Assembly: GCA_964247055.1 (NCBI GenBank)
Contig: OZ176054.1
Location: 5,456,001 to 5,520,000, forward strand
DNA: 64,000 nt
Source of the DNA: Paragordius varius
Lineage: Eukaryota; Animalia; Nematomorpha
Direction: 5' to 3'
Part shown: one piece after another, positions 333-19,222 of the stretch
Position numbering within the stretch: position 1 is the stretch's first letter
Layout: every line of letters starts with the position of its first letter
Position numbers and translations under genes: made by a program
Notes under the pieces: generated by a model
Told to the model about the DNA's origin: nothing
What the model saw: the letters and a program-made list of their open reading frames with translations, nothing else
The model's database searches: none

Positions 333-3300
333 GATTCCTATAGCCGCTTTGTGGATAGGTGAAAGCGAAAGATCCGCAGCTTTAACCTCACAAACCAACA
401 CAGGATCAAACCAAACATCAGGTCCCCCAACTATAAATAAATACAGCAAAAATTTAAATTATAAATACAAAGCCTGAAATCTTAATGACAAATTATTTTT
501 TTAAAAAAACGTACATTAAACCTTAACATTTTAATGTAAAATATCGTTTTGGAATAGGAATTGAATGGAAAATGTAAATTAACACTCTCAATTACATTCA
601 AGATTTTACCATTTAGGTTATGTAAAAAAATAAATTTAAAAAATATACTTTCGTCTTTAAAATATATGTCTTTTCGTTCTTAAGTTTCATCTTTATAATT
701 ATAACTTATACTGTAATAATATATTTAAATATCCAAAATTTTCGGCAAAATATTAACTTTTAATCGACAATTAATGATACCATTTGATCCATCGATCCCA
801 TTGTAACCACTTACATAGTAAGATTTTGGACCCGCAATTATGTGCGGCTTTAATTTATCTCTCAATTCTTCTAAATCGGCATCTTTGAACCCGGTCCCAA
901 GCTATTTGTACAAATTATATGTTTTATAGATTTTTTTGTGTTAATGCACTTGAGTGCCTCATAAAAAATAAAAGTATATGTTATAAATAAATATTTATTA
1001 ATTTAATGATATAAACGGGATAATATATATATATTTTAAAAAAATGAAACAGTAAACTAGTCAGAATGTTTTTAGTGTCAATATATATATATATATATAT
1101 AATCGTATAATAAATTATGTTTGTATTATAACATTAAAATATTATTTTTGGACTTTAATTCTTATTAGAGAAACATTTTATCATACTATGTAGAATTGGA
1201 ATAAGCCTGTTTTCACAGGCATACCATGTTCATCGTAAAGAGAAACGTTGTTTTGATTTATGGACTTTTTACTAAATTCTTATGGTTTTCAATGCAGAAG
1301 AAAACAAAAATAGATTTATTTGAAAATTAGTATATTCAAGTTTCGTATTACACATTTATGAACCAATTTTAGTATGGGGACATATTTCCAACTATTAAAA
1401 AAATTGTAATTAGAGTGGATGGTATTACTATTTTGGTAACATAGATAGATTTTACATACTTTCTGGTCCTTATAAAAAAACTCATAAATTAGCGATTAGC
1501 TTTTAATTAATTATTGGGTACTTGATCCCTAAACATACGAAAAAAAAGTATTCCTTAAGATTTTTTAGAGAATTACCTTACAAATACTTTGATATTGTTC
1601 ATTGGCATCATCATAACAGGCGAGCAATAAGCCTCCATAAACTCCGGTTCTTTTACCTTGCCCTTGATAAGCCCCAATGATAACCAAATCAAATGTGTCG
1701 CCAGTACTGTCAATATAATCCTTTTTTAACTAAAACGATTGGGAAATATATATATATATATTATAAAATAAGTTTGCACAAAAAAATTCACAAAAAATAT
1801 TATTTGTCTAATCATTAGGTATTATTAATTAAAACCATTTTAGGTGCAAAAAATATGCACAAAATATATTATATTTAAACATAAAATAGTTATAAGATAT
1901 TAATATATATAAATTAATTGCATTACGAGGAAAATAAAGTTTTATGATGACAAATATCAAAAAAAATCGTTTTTCCAAAAACCAATAAAAGGATTAACCG
2001 TGGTTTAAGTTATAGCAAATTTTTTTTAAAAAACACGAAAATTTAAATTAAATTTATGCTAATAAAAATATTGAAGGGCAAACTTTTAGCCATTTGTTAG
2101 AGCGTTTATCGATTTCATATAGGGAATCTAACGCTTTGACCATTAATCCTTCACAATTTCCTAGGATTAAAAATATTATTTAGACACAAAAAAACAATTA
2201 AAAAACAAAATTATACCACCCGATTGTTAAACGTTATAAAAATAGATATTTATGTTAGTAATTAATTAAAACTTATTTTAAAGTATATATATGGAAATCA
2301 TATATAATCTATGCCATAATAGTAAGTAATATTCCATTGAAAATTATGGAAAACATGTTATTAATAATAAAATTTATTAGTGAAAAGCAAGCCGAGAAAA
2401 CAAATTATGATTTTGCATTTTTGTAAAATTTAAAAAAAAATGAGTAAAAATGTCATCACCTTTAACACTTGCTTCCATAAATTCTGCGATTTCATCCAGG
2501 ACGGCAGGAGAATCTTTTTCAACATCCAAATGTTGTGCAAAATGAAAATGACCTAACATACATTTTACACATAATTAAATTAAAAAATATATTTATATTA
2601 AACAATTAAAGCCAAATATAACAGAAAAAACATATTTTTCAAACTTGTAAAAAACAATAATAATAATATAATAATAAAATATGAGTTAAACGCTGTTTCC
2701 TTAAATATACGATATAATTTTATGCATTGCCTATTTAAAAAATTATATCATAAATGGGAATAACCTATATGACACCTTAAGTTTTTTTGCATATTTCGCA
2801 TAGAATTTGTTAATTTTATCGGATTCTGAGACTCATTTGTAACCCTATTCAAAATGTCTCCTATAAAACGTAAAAACGGACCTCACAATACTATAAAAAT
2901 AAAAAGCGAAAGAAATATTGATATAACCTAAATGTGCATTAAAATTGGTATAAAGGATTTCTCTCCGTTTTTTAAATGTTAGTTCTGTCAATGGATTATC
3001 ATTCAAGAAAAGAAGATCAAAAGCAAAAACACAAACGTCCACTTTGATTGCATGGGATGAAGCATCCTAAATATTTAAAAAGTATATTTTGTGCGATGAA
3101 TTAAACTGAATTTATAGGTTTTGGAATAATTTGATGCAAGCATCACCAAAATTAATGATGATTTCGTTAGAAATATCTAATTTTGTGAAATTAAAACAAA
3201 ATCAAAACTAAAGAAAAAACATTTATAAATTAATCGAATACTTAATTCAAAATAATATTTAGTAAATGTAAAAAAGCACTCTAAAAATTATATTTTATAA

Positions 3301-6300
3301 TACACTTAACCAACTTTAATATACGAATTAAGTACACTTCTAAATTATTAAATGTAAAAGTTATGAAGCATATCCCTGAAAGCATATATAAAACTAATAC
3401 TTTGCGTTTTCGAGTAGTCAAAATTTGAAAGGGTAAGATTTGTTGCTTTTCGGCATCAAAAGCTACAACTTCGGCATCCATTATAAAATTCTTAACGTTT
3501 GTTTTATCATATATTATTCCACGATTGTTGTGTGTATTCGATTCCCCGTCTAATTTTTAAATAATAATAATAAAATATTGCAAACGACTAAAAAATTTTA
3601 GTGTTTTGTTGTATTTAATGTAAATAAAATATATATACATATAATTATACAATTTTTATGTAAACTTATTGTTTAAAATTTTGAAATAATAAGTTAAAAT
3701 AATAGGACAACCAAATTTTTTAACATTTTATTGAAATTTTATTTAAATGAGCCAATAAACACTTTCAACTTAGTATACTTAGGTGATAATTAAATTTTGC
3801 TTTAGTTTTTTTTAACCCTTTTCACATCTTATTTCAACACAAGTTTTACATAAGCAAAATATACAATATTTAATATAAAGTGTATAATTCAATAAAATTT
3901 CCATTATGTTTGATTATAATTACCACTAATTTCCCTTTCCCATTGTAATTTTTCAATTAAATCGGGATACTTTGTTGTGGTATCTTCTTGATTACGACTA
4001 TAAACCCGATATGTGCCATCCGAACATAAATGAATCTTGGATGATAATATATATATATATATATATATAATAAACGTTATGTTAGCTTTTGACACAATAT
4101 AACTTAAGGTGTATACCATAGATAGTGTATAAAATAAATTATAATTTTGTGAAAAAATAAACCTACACTTATCTATGAATTCTTAAATCTCATTCTAAAT
4201 TTCTAATGCTACCTTATATACTTAAAATGGCTTAGTGTGTAGTAGCTCCCGATATATATTTATATATATAAATAAATAAACTTAGTCAAAGTAAATGATA
4301 AATAATTACTATAATTTTGCTGAATAAAATTCAATAAAGATTCGAAATTAATTAATTCTTTAGTGGACCAAGTAACTTTAAAAAATAAAATTTAAATTGA
4401 ATTTTGGAAAAATTTGTTGGGTGCCTGTTCACATATAAAAATGTTTTTATACTGGTATTTTTGATTCCAGATATTTGGAACTAAAAGAATTGATAAAGGA
4501 TTATATATACATATCATCTAATTTGTGTTGATTTGTGGTTTTCAGATTATTTATCAATATAAGTAGTTTTGACCCAAAAAACTCAGTAAATCAATATAAA
4601 ACAAATTTGTTCATGTTTAAAAACAAATATTAACCTGAGCACGTTCTCCGTCATATTTCCATTCAAATGTTAAAGGTTCTGCTAAGAATTTATCCTCGCC
4701 TTTACTTTTTGAGCCTGATTCAAATTTTTCAAGTAAATCCTTCACATCTCCTTTCGTGGGCTGTGCCAACATAGGTTTTACAGGAATGCCTAATTTAAAT
4801 TACCATATTAACCGGATAAAATACAAATGTGAATTTTTATTTAAAAAACTAAAATGCTAAAAAAATTATAAAAAATTGCCAAATTTTGGCTCTCGGTAAT
4901 TTTTTTGTACCACTAACTAAAATTCATGAGCATTTAGATCAAGCATTGGATATATCATGTTTCATATTCAAAACGTTTAAAAAATAAAATACTCTCCAAC
5001 ATAAACTTTCCCTAAATATAATTTGCATAAATTATAAATTAATTAAGTGATTGAAAACAAAACGGTTTGTCAAGCTTAAATAATACCGGGATGCATCTTA
5101 CAATGTTTCATAAGGTTGGAGATACCATGTTTCATTATTAAAGGTATAATAATATCGTAAGATGGGCATTCGCTGCAAAAAAATATAATAAAATTTCTTT
5201 AAACACTAACATTTAACTATTAAACAAAGTGATAAACATAATATATATAAAACTTGAATGCATTTTTCAGTATAGCGGTATTTTCGTCAATTTTTTTCTT
5301 ATTTTTCGATTCTAGATTAAATAAACATAAAATATACCATAGATATTTTTGATATGAACAAATTCATATATATATTTAAATATAAAACCGGTAAATGCTT
5401 GGGAGAGAGCTGCTAATATACTGGCCTGAGCTAAACCGATCCGCATTTTACCAGTGACAAATCTTACAATATATTTGGCTTCATATGATTGACTGTGGAC
5501 AAATATTTCTTTCAACTTACCCAATTTACGAGATTGGCTCTATAATATAAATTTCTTTACTGTAAAATATCGTAAAATAAAATCAATATTTTATAAAATA
5601 AAACATGGGTTAAAATCATTGGTTCTACAATGATTTTAATTAACTATTTCTTTTTATTCCAATTATTTTATATATAAATGTCTGTTTGCGAGAAAAGTAG
5701 CACACGATTAAATTTTGGTTGGCTATTTAATAAGAAAATCAAGCATTCTGTAAATGTACAAAAAAGGATGTATAATTTTTACCGAAAAACAATAGAACTA
5801 GACCAAAAACCTTTTTCCAAGAAAAAAATTGCCGTTAAAGATAGATAATAAGAAACCAAAATCAACGGTTCCAATTTCATTACTAATTTCTTAAAAAAGC
5901 ATATACATTTTGTCCACTAATTTCGGATATTTCTTTGAAAGCATCATAAACTTTTCGAACTGTCAAATGTTTTTTGGTGTTGGAAAACATAGTTTTTTGT
6001 GTGCCTTTACTTTGCTGAGCTACTATACCAATATCGCCTTTCGCTTTAATCTCATTTTTTATTGTCGCTAGCGTTCGACCTATATATAAAAATCATGGTA
6101 TTCATTGTGGCAAAAACAGTATGATTCACTTTTTAATTAAATATTAGGCAACGTATAAAAATTATGATATTTATATATGGATTTATCAAAAAACATTAAT
6201 GTTATTATCTAAAAACATATATTATAATATACTTTAATAAATATAAAACTCATCGATCTTTATAAAATTTAAGAAACTTCGGTTATGCAAATCAATGCTT

Positions 6301-10392: not shown

Positions 10393-12603
10393 TTACATAA
10401 CTCCTGGAGGTGGCATACCTATTAGAAGAAAATATAATGATGAATTGTCAATTAAATTTCATATATATTTAATATTGGAGATAAATTAACGAAATAAAAT
10501 AATTTGTTTAGTTTTTAATATATCTATGTAAAATGTAATAATTAATTATGTAAATTGATAAAGAATGATAATTATAATCTTATACGACTAAAATAGACAT
10601 TTTAAAATAATATAATTAGTACATTAAAATCAATTGAAATATCCTAATAAACGACCAAAATCTTAGAATATAGTTAAAAAAATCAATTTAATTTTTCGCA
10701 TTAAGAAAGTATATATAGAAAATGCACAAATTTAATTAATTTTTTTCTAATATTAAATTTTAGGGCAACGTTCAATTAAAATTTCTAATAACAGATCGAA
10801 TATAATCCAAAGATAAAAAAAATATGTAAATTTTAAAAAAGAGCATTATTACACGTTGCCAAAGTTCGGCATTGAGAATATTATAACGAAACAAGTGAAA
10901 AACTTACAAATAGAATTATATTATCAAACAAATTAACAACTCTATTACAAACTTATTCCTTCATAGAATCTAAGATAAATAATATAACATAATATATAAC
11001 TAATACATGTAAAAACTTTAATTTCCGAACCCTTTAACTATAAAAATATAACCAATGCTATAAAACTACACTGAAATTTTAGAAATGGTTAAGACGGAAA
11101 AATACAGTAAATAAGCGTATTATTGGTTATAAGAGTTTTTTTATTTAATAGGAAAAAATAAGAAAGTCAGGATAAACTTTTTAAATAATTCATAATTAAA
11201 CTATATACTGTGCAATTTAAGCTGGAAATAACAAAAATTTGCGCCTCCTTTACAATAAAATTTTTTATATTAACAAAATAAAATAACATATAAACAATAA
11301 CCAATAAATATACAATTTCTAATTATTTATCAGAATTGAGCGCAAATGCTTATTGAAGAAAATAAAAAAATAATTTTGCTTAATACGCATTTAAGCTTAA
11401 TTTTAGGATCGATTATATTATTATTTTTAAACATATAATTCTATCAATTCTATTTTATCTAAAAATTTTTGGGAATTCACATACCTCCTTGAGGCATCAT
11501 CATTTGGGGTGCGGGTCCGCCCAATCCCACAGCTGGTCCTTGAAGACCCATCATTGGAGCACCTGATGGCACTATTCCGCGTCCGGCCGCTCGACCCATT
11601 CCTGGTCCCGGTGGCACAATACCAGCTGCTGCTACAGGCACGCGAGGTTTACCATCCTAAAGAAAAATAAAAATTTATTTAAATATCAAATAAAGTTTAC
11701 TAAGAAAACATATGCCTTAGGATTCATTGATATAATTTAAGATAATAATATGGTTCAAATTAAAATATTTATTTACTAAACATTCAATATTTCGTTTAAT
11801 TTATAAGCTTCTTGAAACAAAAATATCAGTCCTCTGAGTGTCAATGGTGAACTTAATTCTCATACCTACTGCTTTATTCCAAAAAACTGAATTTAGCAAA
11901 ATATAGAATGTATATAAAATAAAATTTTCATTCAATTAAATAGATTATTATCCTGAGTTTGTTAATATCGTAACATACATCAAAGCTGTTAAATCTTCAA
12001 AATTTTAGGTAGCTGATGTAAGTTAATTTTTCATATTAAATTTATGTTAATAGGAGAAAGATAAGCGAGAATGCCATCGTTGTTAAATTTAACAAACTTA
12101 GCCATAGGCTCAAATTATCCATTATGTGAAAGTAAAAACTCACCAGGATGTTACTAATAAAAACTCTGCAAATTATAACCAATATTAGTGTAAGAAACGT
12201 AACTTACTCTTAAATTAATTTTACTATAAAATATTAATTAAACCTTAAATTATTAATCTCGTTTTTATATAATATATAATATGAACTTCGGGAGGGGGTG
12301 GTCCATGAACGGTAACAGAAACAACATTCTCGCCTCGCAAAAGCACTAAGCCTAATGTTCGCTTTTCTTCCCGTTCTGTATTAGAATCATCTTTCGCTCG
12401 TATAATTCTAAACTCTTCACAGTCTGCCAAAATAACATTCATGTGCTTGTCAAACGCTCTGAAAGTTCCTATAAAAGAGCGTCCATCTTGAAAAGTGATC
12501 CGCATTCGATAGTTAATATAGTTAAGCATTTTATTCCCACGGCCGGCACCCTATATATATTTTATTTAAGATTAAATTAATTATAAATATATGATCTTAC
12601 CAT
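10393..12603 (-). CDS. SNRPB: Small nuclear ribonucleoprotein SmB (4 exons: 12601-12603, 12287-12550, 11485-11656, 10393-10418; about 154 aa)
   Basis: [49 protein letters not shown]...[28 protein letters not shown] matches the SmB Sm fold; GRAAGRG and Pro/Gly/Met tail; phase-compatible last exon GMPPPGVM*. The last exon is less certain than the others. Confidence 0.95.
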
Positions 12604-12625
12604 GTTGAAATTTGAATGGAGCTAA

Positions 12626-14278
12626 GGATAAACTAACCGGGACTTTTTGATGTATGGCACCGGCTGACGCAACATCCTCTCCAGGCTAGAATCGAACAAT
12701 GACCGTAAATCCTTAATGACCCCGATCTTTAAAACTTACCTAAAAAACTTCAATAATTGTGGCCAACTGAGCTCTTGAAGCTGCGCTGATGAACGCGATT
12801 ACGATTATACCCCGAAAACCTCGATCACTTTTAAGCTCTTGGCAAGAGGAAACGCACCAGAGTTACTAATCCTATCCCGTTGAAAACCAACGCAAAACTC
12901 CCTGCTATATGACGATGACATCGGAACCGCTTATATTTGAGGGCTGATTACCAATATTCAACTTTTATTTGAACCGGATATGCTCCAGATTGAATGATAC
13001 TATTGCGAAGTCGGTATTATTTTAAGGTTAATTCCCACTGCTGGATAAGGTATGAATTTTATTTTACAACGCTCTGTTAATGTCAGTTAATATTGATGTA
13101 ATTAAGGTATAAATTTTTATTTTAAAACGCTTTGTTAATGTCAGTATTGATGTAATTAAGGTATAAATTTTTATTTCACAACGCTCTGTTAATGTCAGTT
13201 AGTATTCATGTAATTAAGGTATACATTTTTATTTTACAACGCTTTGTTAAAGTCAGTATTGATGTAATTAAGGTATAAATTTTTATTTCACAACGCTCTG
13301 TTAATGTCAGTTAGTATTCATGTAATTAAGGTATACATTTTATTTTACAACGCTTTGTTAATGTCAGTATTGATGTAATTAAGGTATAAATTTTTATTTT
13401 ACAACGCTCTGTTAATGTCAGTTAGTATTCATGTAATTAAGGTATAAATTTTTATTTTACAACGCTCTGTTAAAGTCAGTTAGTATTGATGTAATATTTA
13501 AAACAAAATCTGTTAATGGTAAACACCTATACAGATAGTTAAGAATATAGACTGCTTCCCACAGATATCCCACGAACAAAATGTACCACTGAATGTATAA
13601 AGCATGCAAGACGCGACTCTGAATAGACTATTAACCAATTATTGTGGGACGACGTCCTGGGAAGCAATGTTGGAGCCGCTGATATTTGAGCAGGGCTGGT
13701 TACCAATCTCCGACATTTTGTTGGTCGGAGTTGAGTCTTACCTCAGAGCAAGGTCAACGACCACTTATCCCGGGTTAGCGTCCCAGTTGAAGGTACAACT
13801 GAAACATGGTCGCACGAAGGGGTAACGTTGACGCTTGTAATGTCTAAGATCTCCAAAATTGGTCTACCTTAAAGGCCACACTCATTTAGAAGCAAAAGAA
13901 GACCCCCTTCCACACCAAAGATAAGAGCTTAATTAACTCTACATTTGATTTAATATAGACCTTTGACATTACTTTATGGAGTAATCAAACCCTGTTTGTA
14001 CGGTTATTTAAACTCAAATATTGCTTTTATTTACCTAACAAGGCGATATTAACATTTCTTTTAATATATGTATATATATATAGCTTATTAACTATACTAA
14101 CTCCCATTAACACATCTAACATGAAGGCTTTTATTTATGTATGTAGATACTAACGTCAACCCCAACCTCCGATGTGTTTCCCCGCTCTGAAGCTCAATGC
14201 ATTACGGGTGGGTAGGGATTGCCTTGACGGCAGGTGGCCGACGATCTTCCGACGCTACACCCTTTACTTGTTGTTTAC
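12626..14278. mobile_element. 1,653-bp insertion of unknown class flanked by a 14-bp direct repeat (probable TSD)
   Basis: TTGAATGGAGCTAA occurs exactly at 12612-12625 and 14279-14292; the interior is GC-richer than the flanks, carries a minisatellite and ends in a short repeat-like tail (TTTACTTGTTGTTTAC). No TIR or RT motif recognised. Confidence 0.75.
13047..13495. repeat. Minisatellite, 8 units of 53-58 bp alternating long/short (about 112-bp higher-order dimer)
   Basis: AAGGTAT starts at 13047, 13104, 13158, 13216, 13270, 13328, 13381 and 13439; long units carry ctctg...gtcagttagt, short units ctttg...gtcagt. Confidence 0.97.
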
Positions 14279-14942
14279 TTGAATGGAGCTAAATTACCGT
14301 AGCAAAAAAAGTGATTTAATAAATACAAATGTATTATGGAATATTATGACGCCCCACAACTCTTTAATTTGTTTGATTAATTCTTATTTTATAAATTATA
14401 TTTTTTTTGTAAAAGCATTATCTATAAATATGTGATCATATATGATAATCATTATTTTTTTCAGAATACTGCGGTTGTATATATAATCATATCGATATTA
14501 TGTTAATGTAACCAGATATTTTGAACTTGGACGCAGTACAAAATTAAAACATTCTTTGTTCTTTTCACATCATCGTTGTGGGATATTACACAGTTTCCAA
14601 AAATATCCTGATAAAATATATATTCTGATAGAAAAATATCAGTATTATCAGGTTGCTTTTGATTTTAACCTTTACGATTATTAAAAGTTATTTACACTTT
14701 GGTAGGTGCTCAGTATAAAATGACAAAAGGTGTGCAATTTTTTCACTTACAATGGTGAAGGCTAAATGCTTCAAAAATATCACTAAATTATAACATAAAC
14801 TACATGTAAAAAGCAAAAAATTTTAATTATTTAGATGTGGGCCCTGATAGTCCCAAATTTTTTGGCTTTTTAAAATGGACTGTTCTCTTAAAAAAACGCA
14901 AAAATTACGACATTGTGTAATAATTATATATATATAAAATAT

Positions 14943-15013
14943 GGCCAACAAAGTCCTATTGCCACCTCCCCGTGGTGTTGGCTGGGGCATGAAAATGCGC
15001 TAACGGCAAAGGC
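14943..15013 (+). ncRNA. HDV-like (delta-like) self-cleaving ribozyme at the retrotransposon 5' end
   Basis: P1 GGCCAAC(14943-49)/GTTGGCT(14977-83) with G.U at the cleavage site; P2 CCT(A)TTGCC(14955-63)/GGCAAAGG(15005-12); P3 ACC/GGT; L3 TCCCCGT; P1.1 CC/GG(14984-85); P4 GCAT-GAAA-ATGC; J4/2 GCTAAC with the catalytic C at 15000. Confidence 0.93.
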
Positions 15014-15274
15014 CAGTTTTCTAATGATCTGTAAAATCATTAGTTGTACACAAGGGCATGTGTTACGTAAAAATTGCCTCAATAAACCATGAAGTATAAT
15101 AATATGAATTTGAATTTGAAAGAACATTAAAACCTATCAACATCTCAAATAACAATAATAATTCAACTTATAATAATTATTTTGATAATATTTTTATTTA
15201 TTAATAATATTTCCTATTTAAACTTTTATACCCTATATTTTCTGATATATATTATAATAAAAACTACCAAAACT

Positions 15275-18271
15275 ATGAAAATAAATAATACCGTTAGTAA
15301 TAATAACAAAGCAGTTCTGAAATTTGCTACATGGAATGTGGGTACCCTCGTTAACAAAATATTAATGGTAACAAACACTCTTAGTCATAACAATATAGAT
15401 ATATGTTGCATCCAAGAGGCCAGATTGAAAGGAGAGGGATTGAAAAGCTTAGACGATTATACACTATTCTTTAAAGGAAATGACAAGGGATAAGGTGGTG
15501 TTGCGATTTTCATTAAAAACATCTACCGTGATAACATAATTGATGTAATAAGACATAATCCAAGAATGATTCAAATAAAAATATTGATGAATGATAATGT
15601 AATAAATATAGTTTCAACTTACGCACCACAATCTGGTCTAAGCGAAGCATCAAAAAACGAATATTGGGAAGCCCTCTATGATTTGATGAACAAAACTTCT
15701 TCTAGCGAACAAACTTTTGTTGGTGGTGATTTTAATTGCCATATTAATAATGATAGTAATGAATACCATGGCGTGCATGGTGGAAATGGTGTTGGAGCCC
15801 TCGATAACATGGGCGAGAGTTTGCTAGACTTTTGCATTGCAAATCAACTCATAGTCGCAAATACCCATTTTAAGAAAAAAAGCAACCAGCACATAACATA
15901 TAATTCTGGTGATCACTCATCTATGATAGATTTCATATTAATTCCCAAAAACATTAGGAAACATTTAACAAACATCAAAACTTACTATCAACCCTCCTAC
16001 CAACACAAGCTAATAACAGCATTTCTAATCATCGAGAAAAGCTGTAAGACCGCATTCCAACCCCAAAAAATAAACATAGCAAAGTTAAAGGAGTCAAAAT
16101 TATTAACCGAATACACCAAAAACACAGCGTTAAATATTCCCGAACAAAACAATGTTGAAACTCTATGGAAAAATTTTAAAAGCACAATTCTAACATCTGC
16201 TAAAATACATTGTGGCTTTACTAAACCAATGAGGCAACGGAAAAGCTGGTGGTGGAAAAAGGAAATAAAACCATTGTTGCGTGAAAAAGGCGAAGCATAT
16301 AAAAAATGGAAAAGCTCGAAAAATAAGGATGATAAAAAAGTTTATGATGACAAAAAACGAGAGGTCCAGAAAGCCATTCGACACGCTATGAATGAAAAAT
16401 CCATTAAAATCGCTGAAAGTTTAGAAAAAGACTTTAAAAACCAAACAATTTTTAAAAGACTCAAAAACCTTATCAATAGTAATAAAGATGTTAAAACCAT
16501 AAAATGTATTAAAGATGATAATGATAATATAATAACGAATCCCTCGAAAGTCAAAGAAATTTGGAAAACGAACTTAGAAAAACAACTCAACCAAGTAAAC
16601 CCGACTAAACAAATTAGCATGGTTTCACCAGTAGCTGGTCCCATACAAGAAATCACCATAGATGAAGTCACAACTGCAATCAATAAATTAAAAAGTAACA
16701 AAGCTCCAGGCCCAAGCAGCCTTTCAGTCGACCTCATTCGACCCATCACAAACACTGCAGAATATCTAACAAAACTCTTTAACCAAATAATAATTACAAA
16801 CCAAACTCCCAACGATTGGAAGAACAGCATAATAATCCCCATTTATAAAAATAAAGGCGATCGTTTAAAAACATCGTCCTACCGACCTTTAAAACTTCTA
16901 GAACACACACTGAAAATATTCGAAAATATTTTAGAAAACAGGCTGAGAAAACTTATAAGCTTAGATTCAAATCAGTTTGCATTCCGTCCAAACAGTAGCA
17001 CAATTGATCCCTTGTTCATCCTAAGACGCTTACAAGAAAAATATCTGGAAAAGAAACAAAAGCTATACCATGTCTTTGTAGATCTGGAACATGCGTTTGA
17101 CCAAATACCACGCTCAACAATTCAATGGGCACTACGTAAAAAGGGAATAGAAGAACATACTATACAAATTTTATTACTACTCTATAAAAATACAACAACC
17201 AACGTTAGAACCAATATTGGCAATACAAACAATTTCCCAACAAACGCTGGACTACATCAGAGTTCAGTCCTAAGTCCACTCCTTTTTATAACTATAATGG
17301 ATGCGGCAACGCAAGACATAAGAACTGAATGCCCTTGGGAAATGTTATTCGCCGACGACCTCGTGATAACGACACGATCATGGGATCAACTGGTAAATAC
17401 ATATTCCAAGTGGAAGAAATGCCTTGAACAATATGGAATGATCATAAACGCCACAAAAACAAAAATAATGATAACGGGTGAAAGTGAAACACCCAGATAC
17501 CCCTGTTCCATTTGCAGTAAGGAAGTACGTTCAAATTCCATTAAATGCATATCATGTCAATTGTGGGTACACAAAAAGTGCTCTAAAATAAAAGACAAGT
17601 TAACAAATGTAATTAATTTTAAATGCTTAAATTGCTTAGACCCAAGCAATAAAAATTTTAATCGACCAAAGCTACTTAACATTGATGGACATGATATCGA
17701 ATTGGTTGACTCTTTCGTATACCTAGGAGATGTCATATCATCTCAGGGAAGCCCACAAAAGGCTATCAAAAGAAGAATACAACAAGGTTGGATAAAATAT
17801 AATCAATTAAAATATGTTTTCCAAAACAAACATGTTAACAATCGTAATAAATGGTATCTTTACAAGGCAGGAATAAGACCTGCTCTTACCTATGGTTCTG
17901 AAACCTGGGCATTAAACAAAACAAATCAAACAAAACTCCTAACCAGTGAGAATCGAATACTCAAAAGCTGCTTTCGTACACCAGAAATACCAATTTTCAT
18001 TAAAGAAAACGATAAAATCGATTATATAATTCAAACTAACAGATTGCGTCTATACGGTCATACTCAGAGAAGAGACGCCACCCATCCGTTAAAAACTGTT
18101 GAAAACATTAATGTTGATGGCAATAGAAGAAAGGGACGACCACTCTTTTCTTATAATGATAATATAAAAATGGACTTGAATCAACGTAGCCTTTCCACAG
18201 AACAATGTAAAGATCGTAATTTATGGAGGAAGCTACTTCATGGATATAAAACTCCGAATATGGAGTCCTAA
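15275..18271 (+). pseudogene. RTE ORF: AP endonuclease + reverse transcriptase with inserted PHD finger; one in-frame TAA at 15491-15493
   Basis: The two listed ORFs (15182-15493, 15566-18271) are in the same frame, separated by one stop (KG*GGVAIF). EN motifs FATWNVGTL, DICCIQE, GGDFNCH, SMIDFIL; RT motifs KAPGPS, YRPLKLL, FVDLEHAFD, LHQSSVLSP, LFADDL, FVYLG; RTE C-terminus RLRLYGH...RRKGRP...KDRNLW. Confidence 0.93.
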
Positions 18272-19222
18272 AATTATCCATCCATATATAAAATATATTT
18301 TTTAAAAAATGCACACTATCAAAGATTTAATTTTTATCAAAATTTTTTAGAGCCTACTTCATTTTTAACATGATGGAAACGATATAAACGGTTGAGATGC
18401 TATAACATTTTAGATATATAATTCGATAATGCTAATTCTCAATCAAATTTTGATTTTAATATTCGCTCGTTCCCAAATTTATGTTAGATAAAAATTGTGT
18501 TTTTTTTACAAAAATTCTCCAAAATTTTCAAACCTTAAATTAAATATTTGAACCTATAGTAATGTTCAACATCATCGAATTATTTAGAAAAAGGGATTTA
18601 ATATATCTTAAAGCGTTATACCGTTTACATCTGATTCAAAATCGTTAGAAGTACGCTTCAACAAAATATCTCAATTTGTTTATGCAAAATAATAAGAAAA
18701 TTAATAAAAATTAAAGTTTAGGAAAAAAATTAAATAATATCATTCCTCCAATGAGTATAAACGTAAAAATTCTTAATTTTTATACGAAAAAAGGTTATTT
18801 CATAATCATATGCAATATATTATAAATTTTATATCAACAATTATCTATATAATTTTCCATTTGATAATTATGGCAGAAAATGAACTTTGTAAACTTGATC
18901 AGACATTTATTAAAATACAAAAATTAATTTTATTATTTTAAATTTAGAGGCACCTCTTTTTACGGAAGCCCTGAGTTAAAGAGTCATTATCCCGAGGGAT
19001 TCCAAGATTTAAAGTTTCGTCACTGAAGGCTGCAATCCTAAGTTTTATGTTTAATTCAAGCAGAAAATAAAATATAAACCAATTAAAAATAGGCCAATCT
19101 TAGTTACCGCAAAATGAATCATTTCTCTTTAAATTATAGGGGTTGTTTTTATTGAGAGTACTATATTAAATTCTATAAAAGGTAATTATAATATATTTAC
19201 AAAAAATTAAATTTTAATTTAA

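Follow-up and report, generated by a model that had tools for sequence, protein, structure and literature searches.

Insertions of transposable elements (TEs) that are spliced from the pre-mRNA are known for Tc1 in Caenorhabditis elegans, for Ds and dSpm in maize and for 412 in the vermilion gene of Drosophila. These cases, which mostly concern DNA transposons or a long terminal repeat (LTR) element, were established by RNA analysis, and the element in an exon or leader is tolerated there through cryptic or terminal splice sites. A similar tolerance is proposed here for an insert of 1,653 bp located just upstream of the start codon of SmB, an essential splicing gene, in the horsehair worm Paragordius varius. 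The window, which is the whole stretch of DNA analysed, comprises 64,000 nucleotides (assembly GCA_964247055.1, contig OZ176054.1, positions 5,456,001 to 5,520,000 of the forward strand). The SmB insert differs from Tc1, Ds/dSpm and 412 in being an antisense non-LTR retroposon, and its splicing is a prediction. The chances that it is removed as, or within, an intron of the 5' untranslated region (UTR) are put at about even.

Introners are TE families from which spliceosomal introns arise (PMC9860276, PMC12130899, PMC11282704). Those derived from non-LTR retrotransposons make up about 5% of the classified introner families (PMC12130899), and the derivation of splice signals from target-site duplications (TSDs) is a recognised introner mode (PMC11282704). 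As in introners, the element bears one candidate splice signal of the SmB insert, and the TSD contributes the other. In the family to which the insert belongs, the element ends or the TSD do provide such signals, namely the GT of the tail complement and, in the SmB and MAT1 copies, the AG of the TSD. Unlike in introners, however, many copies at the introns of different genes were not found: an intron-like setting was seen in only 2 of 42 copies (SmB and MAT1), both in the 5' UTR, whereas the majority of copies are intergenic and one in sense orientation breaks up the start of a ribonucleotide reductase (RNR) gene. As far as tested, the family cannot be classed as a specialised introner. Should the splicing be true, the SmB insertion would still be a further example of a documented type of event.

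Non-autonomous partners of long interspersed nuclear elements (LINEs) can carry short-repeat tails, as do those of the CR1/L2 type with octamer tails, and SVA-like composites contain an internal variable number tandem repeat. The P. varius family resembles these retroposons in its tail of 8-nt repeats in place of poly(A), its variable TSDs, its 5' truncation, its non-coding nature and its internal variable tandem array. It differs from them in that no autonomous partner sharing its 3' end and no RNA polymerase III (pol III) head were found, and in its long TSDs of 11-16 bp. Nematodes, the sister phylum of Nematomorpha, use spliced-leader (SL) trans-splicing. The T-rich YAG shortly upstream of the ATG at the SmB and MAT1 targets resembles the acceptor of a nematode outron, to which SL1 is joined, whereas a search of the P. 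varius genome did not reveal the architecture of an SL RNA gene.

The window sequence and a repeat finder show the exact 14-mer TTGAATGGAGCTAA twice, at 12612-12625 and at 14279-14292, with 1,653 bp between the two copies (12626-14278). The SmB-proximal copy is separated from the ATG by 8 nt (12604-12611). The insert is antisense to SmB, the family orientation being the plus strand of the window, and the GC content of its flanking parts is 0.41-0.49 against a background of 0.20-0.28. The minus strand, which gives the SmB sense, reads CAA|GTAAAC at the far junction (GT, 14278-14277) and CCTTAG|CTCC at the near one (AG, 12623-12622). Excision from 14278 to 12622 would remove 1,657 nt, with 10 nt of duplicated sequence left behind. 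The preliminary description had reported an exact 14-bp direct repeat around 1,653 bp upstream of the SmB ATG, with a GT at one junction and an AG supplied by the duplicated target at the other; its coordinates and arithmetic all proved correct. One point needs amending: the first 13 nt of the insert are extra nucleotides rather than family sequence. No empty, insertion-free allele was found in the assembly, which represents one haplotype.

From the SmB-proximal side, the insertion begins with the TSD at 12612-12625, which reads TTAG|CTCCATTCAA in SmB sense and thereby supplies the candidate acceptor. It is followed by the 13 extra nucleotides of the 5' junction, GGATAAACTAACC (12626-12638), which are private to the SmB copy and occur in no other family copy or locus; in SmB sense they form a pyrimidine-rich run and a second AG (12634-12633) before that of the TSD. 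The 5' region of the retroposon (12639-13045) opens with the family's full-length start GGGACTTTTTGATG, the complement of which gives a family-borne AG (12644-12643). An internal array of about eight units, alternating 54- and 58-bp repeats, extends over 13046-13495, and the number of units varies among the copies of the family. The 3' region (13496-14262) is the best conserved part, with up to 99% identity to a copy at C3:437917. The element ends in a microsatellite-type tail of TTTACTTG units (14263-14278), the reverse complement of which, CAA|GTAAAC, holds the candidate donor, and the SmB-distal TSD (14279-14292) follows. The similarity of 78-89% between two segments of about 50 nt on the two sides of the array (12923-12971 and 13672-13723) raises the possibility that the element was put together from two related units.

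The gene behind the insertion can be assigned to SmB/SmN (SNRPB) by its predicted Sm/LSM fold, its SmB-specific N-terminus and its Gly/Pro/Met-rich tail. All its exons lie on the minus strand. Exon 1 consists of the start codon alone (12601-12603) and is followed by a 50-nt intron, GTAAGA...TATAG (12551-12600). Exon 2 (12293-12550) contains the Sm/LSM domain, and its translation is an Sm-fold protein (Pfam LSM, 1.1e-20) whose closest relative by identity is the SmB of the horsehair worm Gordionus (85%). In the alignment with human SmB (1d3b_B, 3.6e-36), residue 2 of exon 2 falls on residue 3 of the human protein, which makes the one-codon exon ATG at 12603-12601 the true start. Exon 3 (11485-11656) encodes the Gly/Pro/Met-rich tail and matches the tail of the Gordionus protein. 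The exons were searched singly rather than as a joined spliced protein. The donor of intron 2, GAA|GTTCAT (12287-12292), is unusually weak and is demanded by the reading frame from exon 2 to exon 3. SmB is single-copy in the 110.6-Mb assembly, no paralogue that could make the window copy dispensable was found there, and the gene is intact as far as it was read, through exon 3.

Dozens of genomic places match the interior of the insert, and about 82 family 3' ends were detected in the 110.6 Mb with a 22-nt probe for the 3' end (at most 2 mismatches). The ends were aligned and the insertion sites inspected for 42 of these copies. Exact TSDs of 11-16 bp (median 13) stand directly after the tail in 23 of the 42. 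The possibility that the 14-mer match arose by chance, or that the interior is single-copy, is therefore rejected: the interior is multi-copy and the sister copies have TSDs of their own. Full-length copies begin with the same motif as the SmB copy, at family position 14-16, and the remaining ones are 5'-truncated at family positions 22-1450. The 5' junctions are often padded with 1-32 extra nucleotides (0-32 over all copies). At the other end, the copies terminate in ...CCCTTTACTTG(TTTACTTG)n with a variable phase of break, after which the direct repeat of the upstream flank follows. The TSD starts with T in 19 of the 23 cases, often with TTG or TTTAC in microhomology with the tail, and the TTG that opens the SmB duplication is likewise common to the tail.

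Position of the TSDs after the tail, tail microhomology, 5' truncation and 5' padding together point to target-primed reverse transcription. The insert is thus almost certainly a non-coding, non-autonomous non-LTR retroposon placed by this mechanism. At the SmB locus, the first nick fell on a T-rich site with microhomology to the (TTTACTTG)n tail and the second 14 nt away, which yielded the 14-bp duplication, and 13 stray nucleotides were added at the 5' junction during the insertion. No open reading frame (ORF) of at least 100 aa, no tRNA (ARAGORN) and no Rfam family (E up to 5) were found within the element, and neither ARAGORN nor Rfam revealed a tRNA-, 5S- or 7SL-derived pol III head, by which a short interspersed nuclear element (SINE) would be recognised. 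Several other assignments were rejected. A DNA transposon with terminal inverted repeats was suggested by a weak likeness of the ends (GGATAAAC and GTTTAC), which consists of copy-specific extra nucleotides and the tail and is missing in other copies. A tRNA-derived SINE head was suggested by a minus-strand look-alike, TTCGATTC...CCA, which is wrongly spaced, and both ARAGORN and Rfam were empty. No hepatitis delta virus (HDV)-like ribozyme exists at the retroposon's own 5' end; the single one present (14943-15012) belongs to an adjoining LINE.

The candidate donor GT stems from the tail repeat, whose reverse complement is (CAAGTAAA)n, and every gene-antisense copy presents donor-like GTAAAC or GTAAAG sites at its upstream end. 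Since the tail is required for retroposition, no selection for splicing is needed to explain the GT, and the donor arose accidentally from the tail sequence, not as an adaptation. Three AGs are available as acceptors in SmB sense: that of the family 5' end (12644-12643, CAAAAAG|TCCC), that in the extra nucleotides (12634-12633) and that of the TSD (12623-12622). They would leave leaders of 39, 29 or 18 nt, all free of ATG. For comparison, the verified introns of the genome were used, which are SmB introns 1-3, a 21-nt intron of MAT1 and a 31-nt intron of RNR. Loose donors (GTAAGA, GTTCAT, GTATGT, GTAAAT, GTATTT) and T-rich TAG acceptors characterise them, and both GTAAAC and CCTTAG fall within the range of these verified sites. 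The two micro-introns (L002:1306-1326 in the MAT1 locus and L011:1436-1466 in the RNR locus) are flanked by exons that align in frame to human proteins.

A further donor-like site, GTATTT at 14326, is the only one that lies at a workable distance in the 130 nt preceding the targeted TTTAG in SmB sense. Together they delimit a candidate older 5'-UTR micro-intron of 38 nt on the minus strand (14289-14326, GTATTT...AATTTAG), which ends at the targeted AG and resembles the verified 31-nt RNR intron. If this putative micro-intron is real, the element would only have lengthened it, the TSD would have regenerated the acceptor and the mRNA would be unchanged. The idea of an insertion at an existing acceptor, put forward in the preliminary description for both cis- and trans-splicing, may therefore hold in its cis form, since the 38-nt GTATTT...TTTAG ends exactly at the targeted AG; its trans form is unsupported, as no SL RNA was found. 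As to whether other copies also sit at TTAG acceptors with a GT at the same end, the GT is present in every antisense copy, and most insertion sites are AT-rich non-coding DNA.

This AT-rich non-coding type prevails among the empty sites rebuilt for the 23 copies whose TSDs are clear. Open frames were scanned near all 42 insertion sites and a Pfam scan was made on 20 of them; the only matches among these 20 were SmB, MAT1, the ATP-cone of RNR and one LINE reverse transcriptase fragment. One copy (L002, C4:5143213-5144783; features at L002:1306-1500 and 3075-3100) lies antisense, 44 nt upstream of the start codon of MAT1, the CDK-activating kinase assembly factor, whose first exon aligns with residues 1-28 to residues 1-28 of human MAT1 (1g25_A, 8e-13). 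In gene sense it opens with ACACAA|GTAAAC and closes with ...AAGCCTTCTCAG|AATAAC. Its candidate acceptor TCAG comes from the TSD, after 28 extra nucleotides, so that the layout CAA|GTAAAC ... CCTTCTCAG|(TSD) is the same as in the SmB copy. This independent antisense copy with a matching GT...YAG layout supports the plausibility of splicing. Another antisense copy (L013, C1:3928255-3929775; features at L013:869-1486 and 3023-3132) interrupts an open frame of 239 codons with no Pfam match; it has the donor-like tail and lacks an AG at the opposite junction, and its status as an intron is ambiguous.

The third copy at a gene start (L011, C6:9514327-9516139; features at L011:1436-1485 and 3314-3324) is in sense orientation, and its TSD TATGTTTGTTA holds the start and first codons of the RNR large-subunit gene. 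Codons 1-4 are split by the element, and the intact frame resumes directly after the tail, 1.8 kb from the old promoter. Human RRM1 is matched from its residue 8 onwards by the next exon (3hnc_A, 2.5e-38), which contains the ATP-cone domain. The gene is single-copy. There is no AG between the tail and the ATG, which places this copy beyond rescue by the proposed splicing scheme.

The ages were estimated with a tree of 32 copies, built on their non-repeat 3' region. The private branch of the MAT1 copy is 0.000, the shortest of the family, that of the SmB copy is 0.005 and that of the RNR copy 0.009, with a median of 0.011 and a maximum of 0.07. The gene-start copies are thus the 1st, 6th and 12th youngest of the 32 (rank-sum P = 0.025). 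The SmB copy is 98-99% identical to the copy at C3:437917 and its TSD is perfect, and by these signs it is a young member of the family. Three of the 42 copies lie less than 60 nt from a verified start codon as compared with about 0.3-0.7 expected (P about 0.01-0.03, post hoc); the expectation takes 0.8-1.6% of the genome as near starts, which follows from 10-15 thousand genes, a rough figure. This hints at a preference of the family for the 5' ends of genes.

How SmB may be expressed across the insert can be considered on this basis. Under removal as, or within, a 5'-UTR intron, the old promoter, which the insertion has placed at a distance of 1.67 kb, would most likely still be the start of the transcripts; the insert lies inside what used to be a short SmB leader. 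The acceptor would be one of the three AGs (12643, 12633 or 12622), and for the donor there would be two options, the tail-complement GTAAAC at 14278 and, in the possible older micro-intron, the GTATTT at 14326. Several findings weigh against such removal. Stronger-looking donors lie within the insert in SmB sense (GAG|GTAAGA at 13741 and TAG|GTAAGT at 12739), as do acceptors (AGs ending at 13657 and at 12740), and with the 11 AATAAA hexamers of the SmB-sense strand they mean that a clean one-step excision is not assured. The 18 ATGs on the SmB-sense strand also speak against removal in one step; that an unspliced SmB leader would hold them counts for the plausibility of splicing. The original T7 tract of the acceptor is lost, and 13 copy-specific nucleotides now form the acceptor context. 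Insertions of the family at gene starts are not generally neutralised, as the RNR copy demonstrates, and the youth of the gene-start copies hints at purging by selection rather than at neutrality. The assembly also shows a single haplotype, and the SmB insertion may be a heterozygous harmful allele. The term "introner-like, self-neutralising" used in the preliminary description thus has to be divided: the TSD-flanked insertion in the SmB leader, the family-wide GT and the repeat of the layout at MAT1 stand, while the label itself does not suit a family with mostly AT-rich non-coding sites, no copy shown as an intron and an unrescued RNR copy. Further points against the label are the acceptor context at SmB, which hangs on the 13 copy-specific nucleotides, and the young gene-start copies, which hint at purging.

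The same observations lend some weight to the main, though less likely, alternative, namely that the insertion is a very recent, possibly heterozygous or polymorphic allele that impairs or abolishes SmB expression. The insertion would then be unneutralised, its GT and AG incidental, and the allele visible because one haplotype was assembled. The youth of the SmB copy, the absence of a rescue route for the RNR-start copy in a single-copy gene, the younger age of the gene-start copies in comparison with the others, and the ATGs and AATAAA hexamers on the SmB-sense strand are in line with this. However, three start-proximal insertions in essential genes on one haplotype are many if each is strongly harmful, a coherent GT...YAG layout is present in two of the three gene-start copies, and the private divergence of the RNR copy is not negligible. 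Splicing would be unneeded if a new SmB start site had arisen inside or at the edge of the element, either from an antisense promoter in its 5' region or from a cryptic initiator in the duplicated target. The spread of a non-autonomous retroposon demands promoter activity carried or attracted at its 5' end, which here abuts SmB, and the distance from the element end to the ATG is only 8-47 nt; were the 3' region also to initiate, the tolerated sense copy at RNR would be accounted for. This explanation is nevertheless unlikely, as neither an Rfam nor a tRNA-type pol III head was found and all three gene-start cases would require outward promoters at both ends.

It is very improbable that the targeted TTTAG|CTCC is a trans-splice acceptor for a spliced leader, with the element in the discarded outron and the acceptor regenerated by the duplicated target. 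The SmB and MAT1 targets are both T-rich, YAG acceptor-like and shortly upstream of the ATG, and three genomic 22-mers resemble nematode SL1. Yet the Rfam SL1 model gave no match, with an uninformative control; the SL1-like 22-mers stood at 4 vs 2 in the reversed control, and none had the architecture of a leader followed by GT and an Sm-site. At the RNR start, moreover, no acceptor lies in the stretch from the element to the ATG, and the literature searched contains no report of trans-splicing for Nematomorpha. The pattern of leader, GT and Sm-site had 0 genomic matches, and a divergent leader would escape it. The three 22-mers (C4:5338835-5338856, C1:8123945-8123966 and C2:14191890-14191911) have GGTTTAATTACC....TTTGA in common with nematode SL1; their count was not above the reversed-pattern control, and no downstream GT plus Sm-site occurred under the pattern tried. 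It is equally hard to credit that the family is a true introner, that is, a retroposon specialised for spliceable introns with its splice signals under selection. Its antisense consensus does begin with (CAA|GTAAA)n and end with CAAAAAG|TCCC, there are two antisense 5'-UTR cases (SmB and MAT1), and introners derived from non-LTR elements are documented (PMC12130899). On the other hand, most of the rebuilt empty sites are AT-rich non-coding, the needs of retroposition account for the tail sequence, and the 13-17 nt left after removal would shift the frame in a coding sequence. No case of a copy acting as an intron within a coding exon was established, the 239-codon frame being ambiguous and its copy having an end without AG.

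Removal from the SmB leader by splicing could be part of a broader picture, though an improbable one, in which a young family prefers the extreme 5' ends of housekeeping genes and its antisense copies are born as spliceable 5'-UTR introns, a non-LTR introner in the making. The tail complement would act as a tandem donor and the acceptor would be taken from the 5' end or the TSD, in an animal whose splicing machinery already copes with introns of 21 nt and with loose donors. Should splicing remove the SmB and MAT1 copies, these would represent fresh, datable intron births from a retroposon in an animal, and the general model in which a TE with its TSD gives a new intron would become an observed event. 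Molecular data for horsehair worms are very scarce. The apparent excess of copies at the start codons of single-copy essential genes also bears on the germ-line chromatin sites nicked by the LINE machinery and on the harmful insertion load of one wild animal. If the copies are heterozygous knock-outs, the outcome would be an ordinary one, damage by a young TE family.

An autonomous LINE that shares the 3' end of the family was not found by divergent partial matches, by the tail pattern or by reverse transcriptase (RT) coordinates. The more divergent partial matches are merely 5'-truncated family copies, the 17-mer of the tail is confined to the 3' ends of the retroposon family, and among the 150 best RT-coding places none stands directly upstream of a family 3' end. 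The adjoining LINE was rejected as a partner because its 3' end is different. This LINE (14943-18283) is complete, with a single ORF for APE and RT (15566-18271) and a 3' UTR of 12 nt. An HDV-like ribozyme occupies it from the first base (14943-15012; drz-agam-1, 38.9 bits). It has its own 13-bp TSD, ATATATAAAATAT (window 14930-18296), and its transcriptional direction is divergent from that of SmB. Elsewhere in the genome, a family copy with its own 15-bp TSD is located inside a LINE fragment encoding reverse transcriptase (L005:3177-3422; RVT_1, 3.9e-11).

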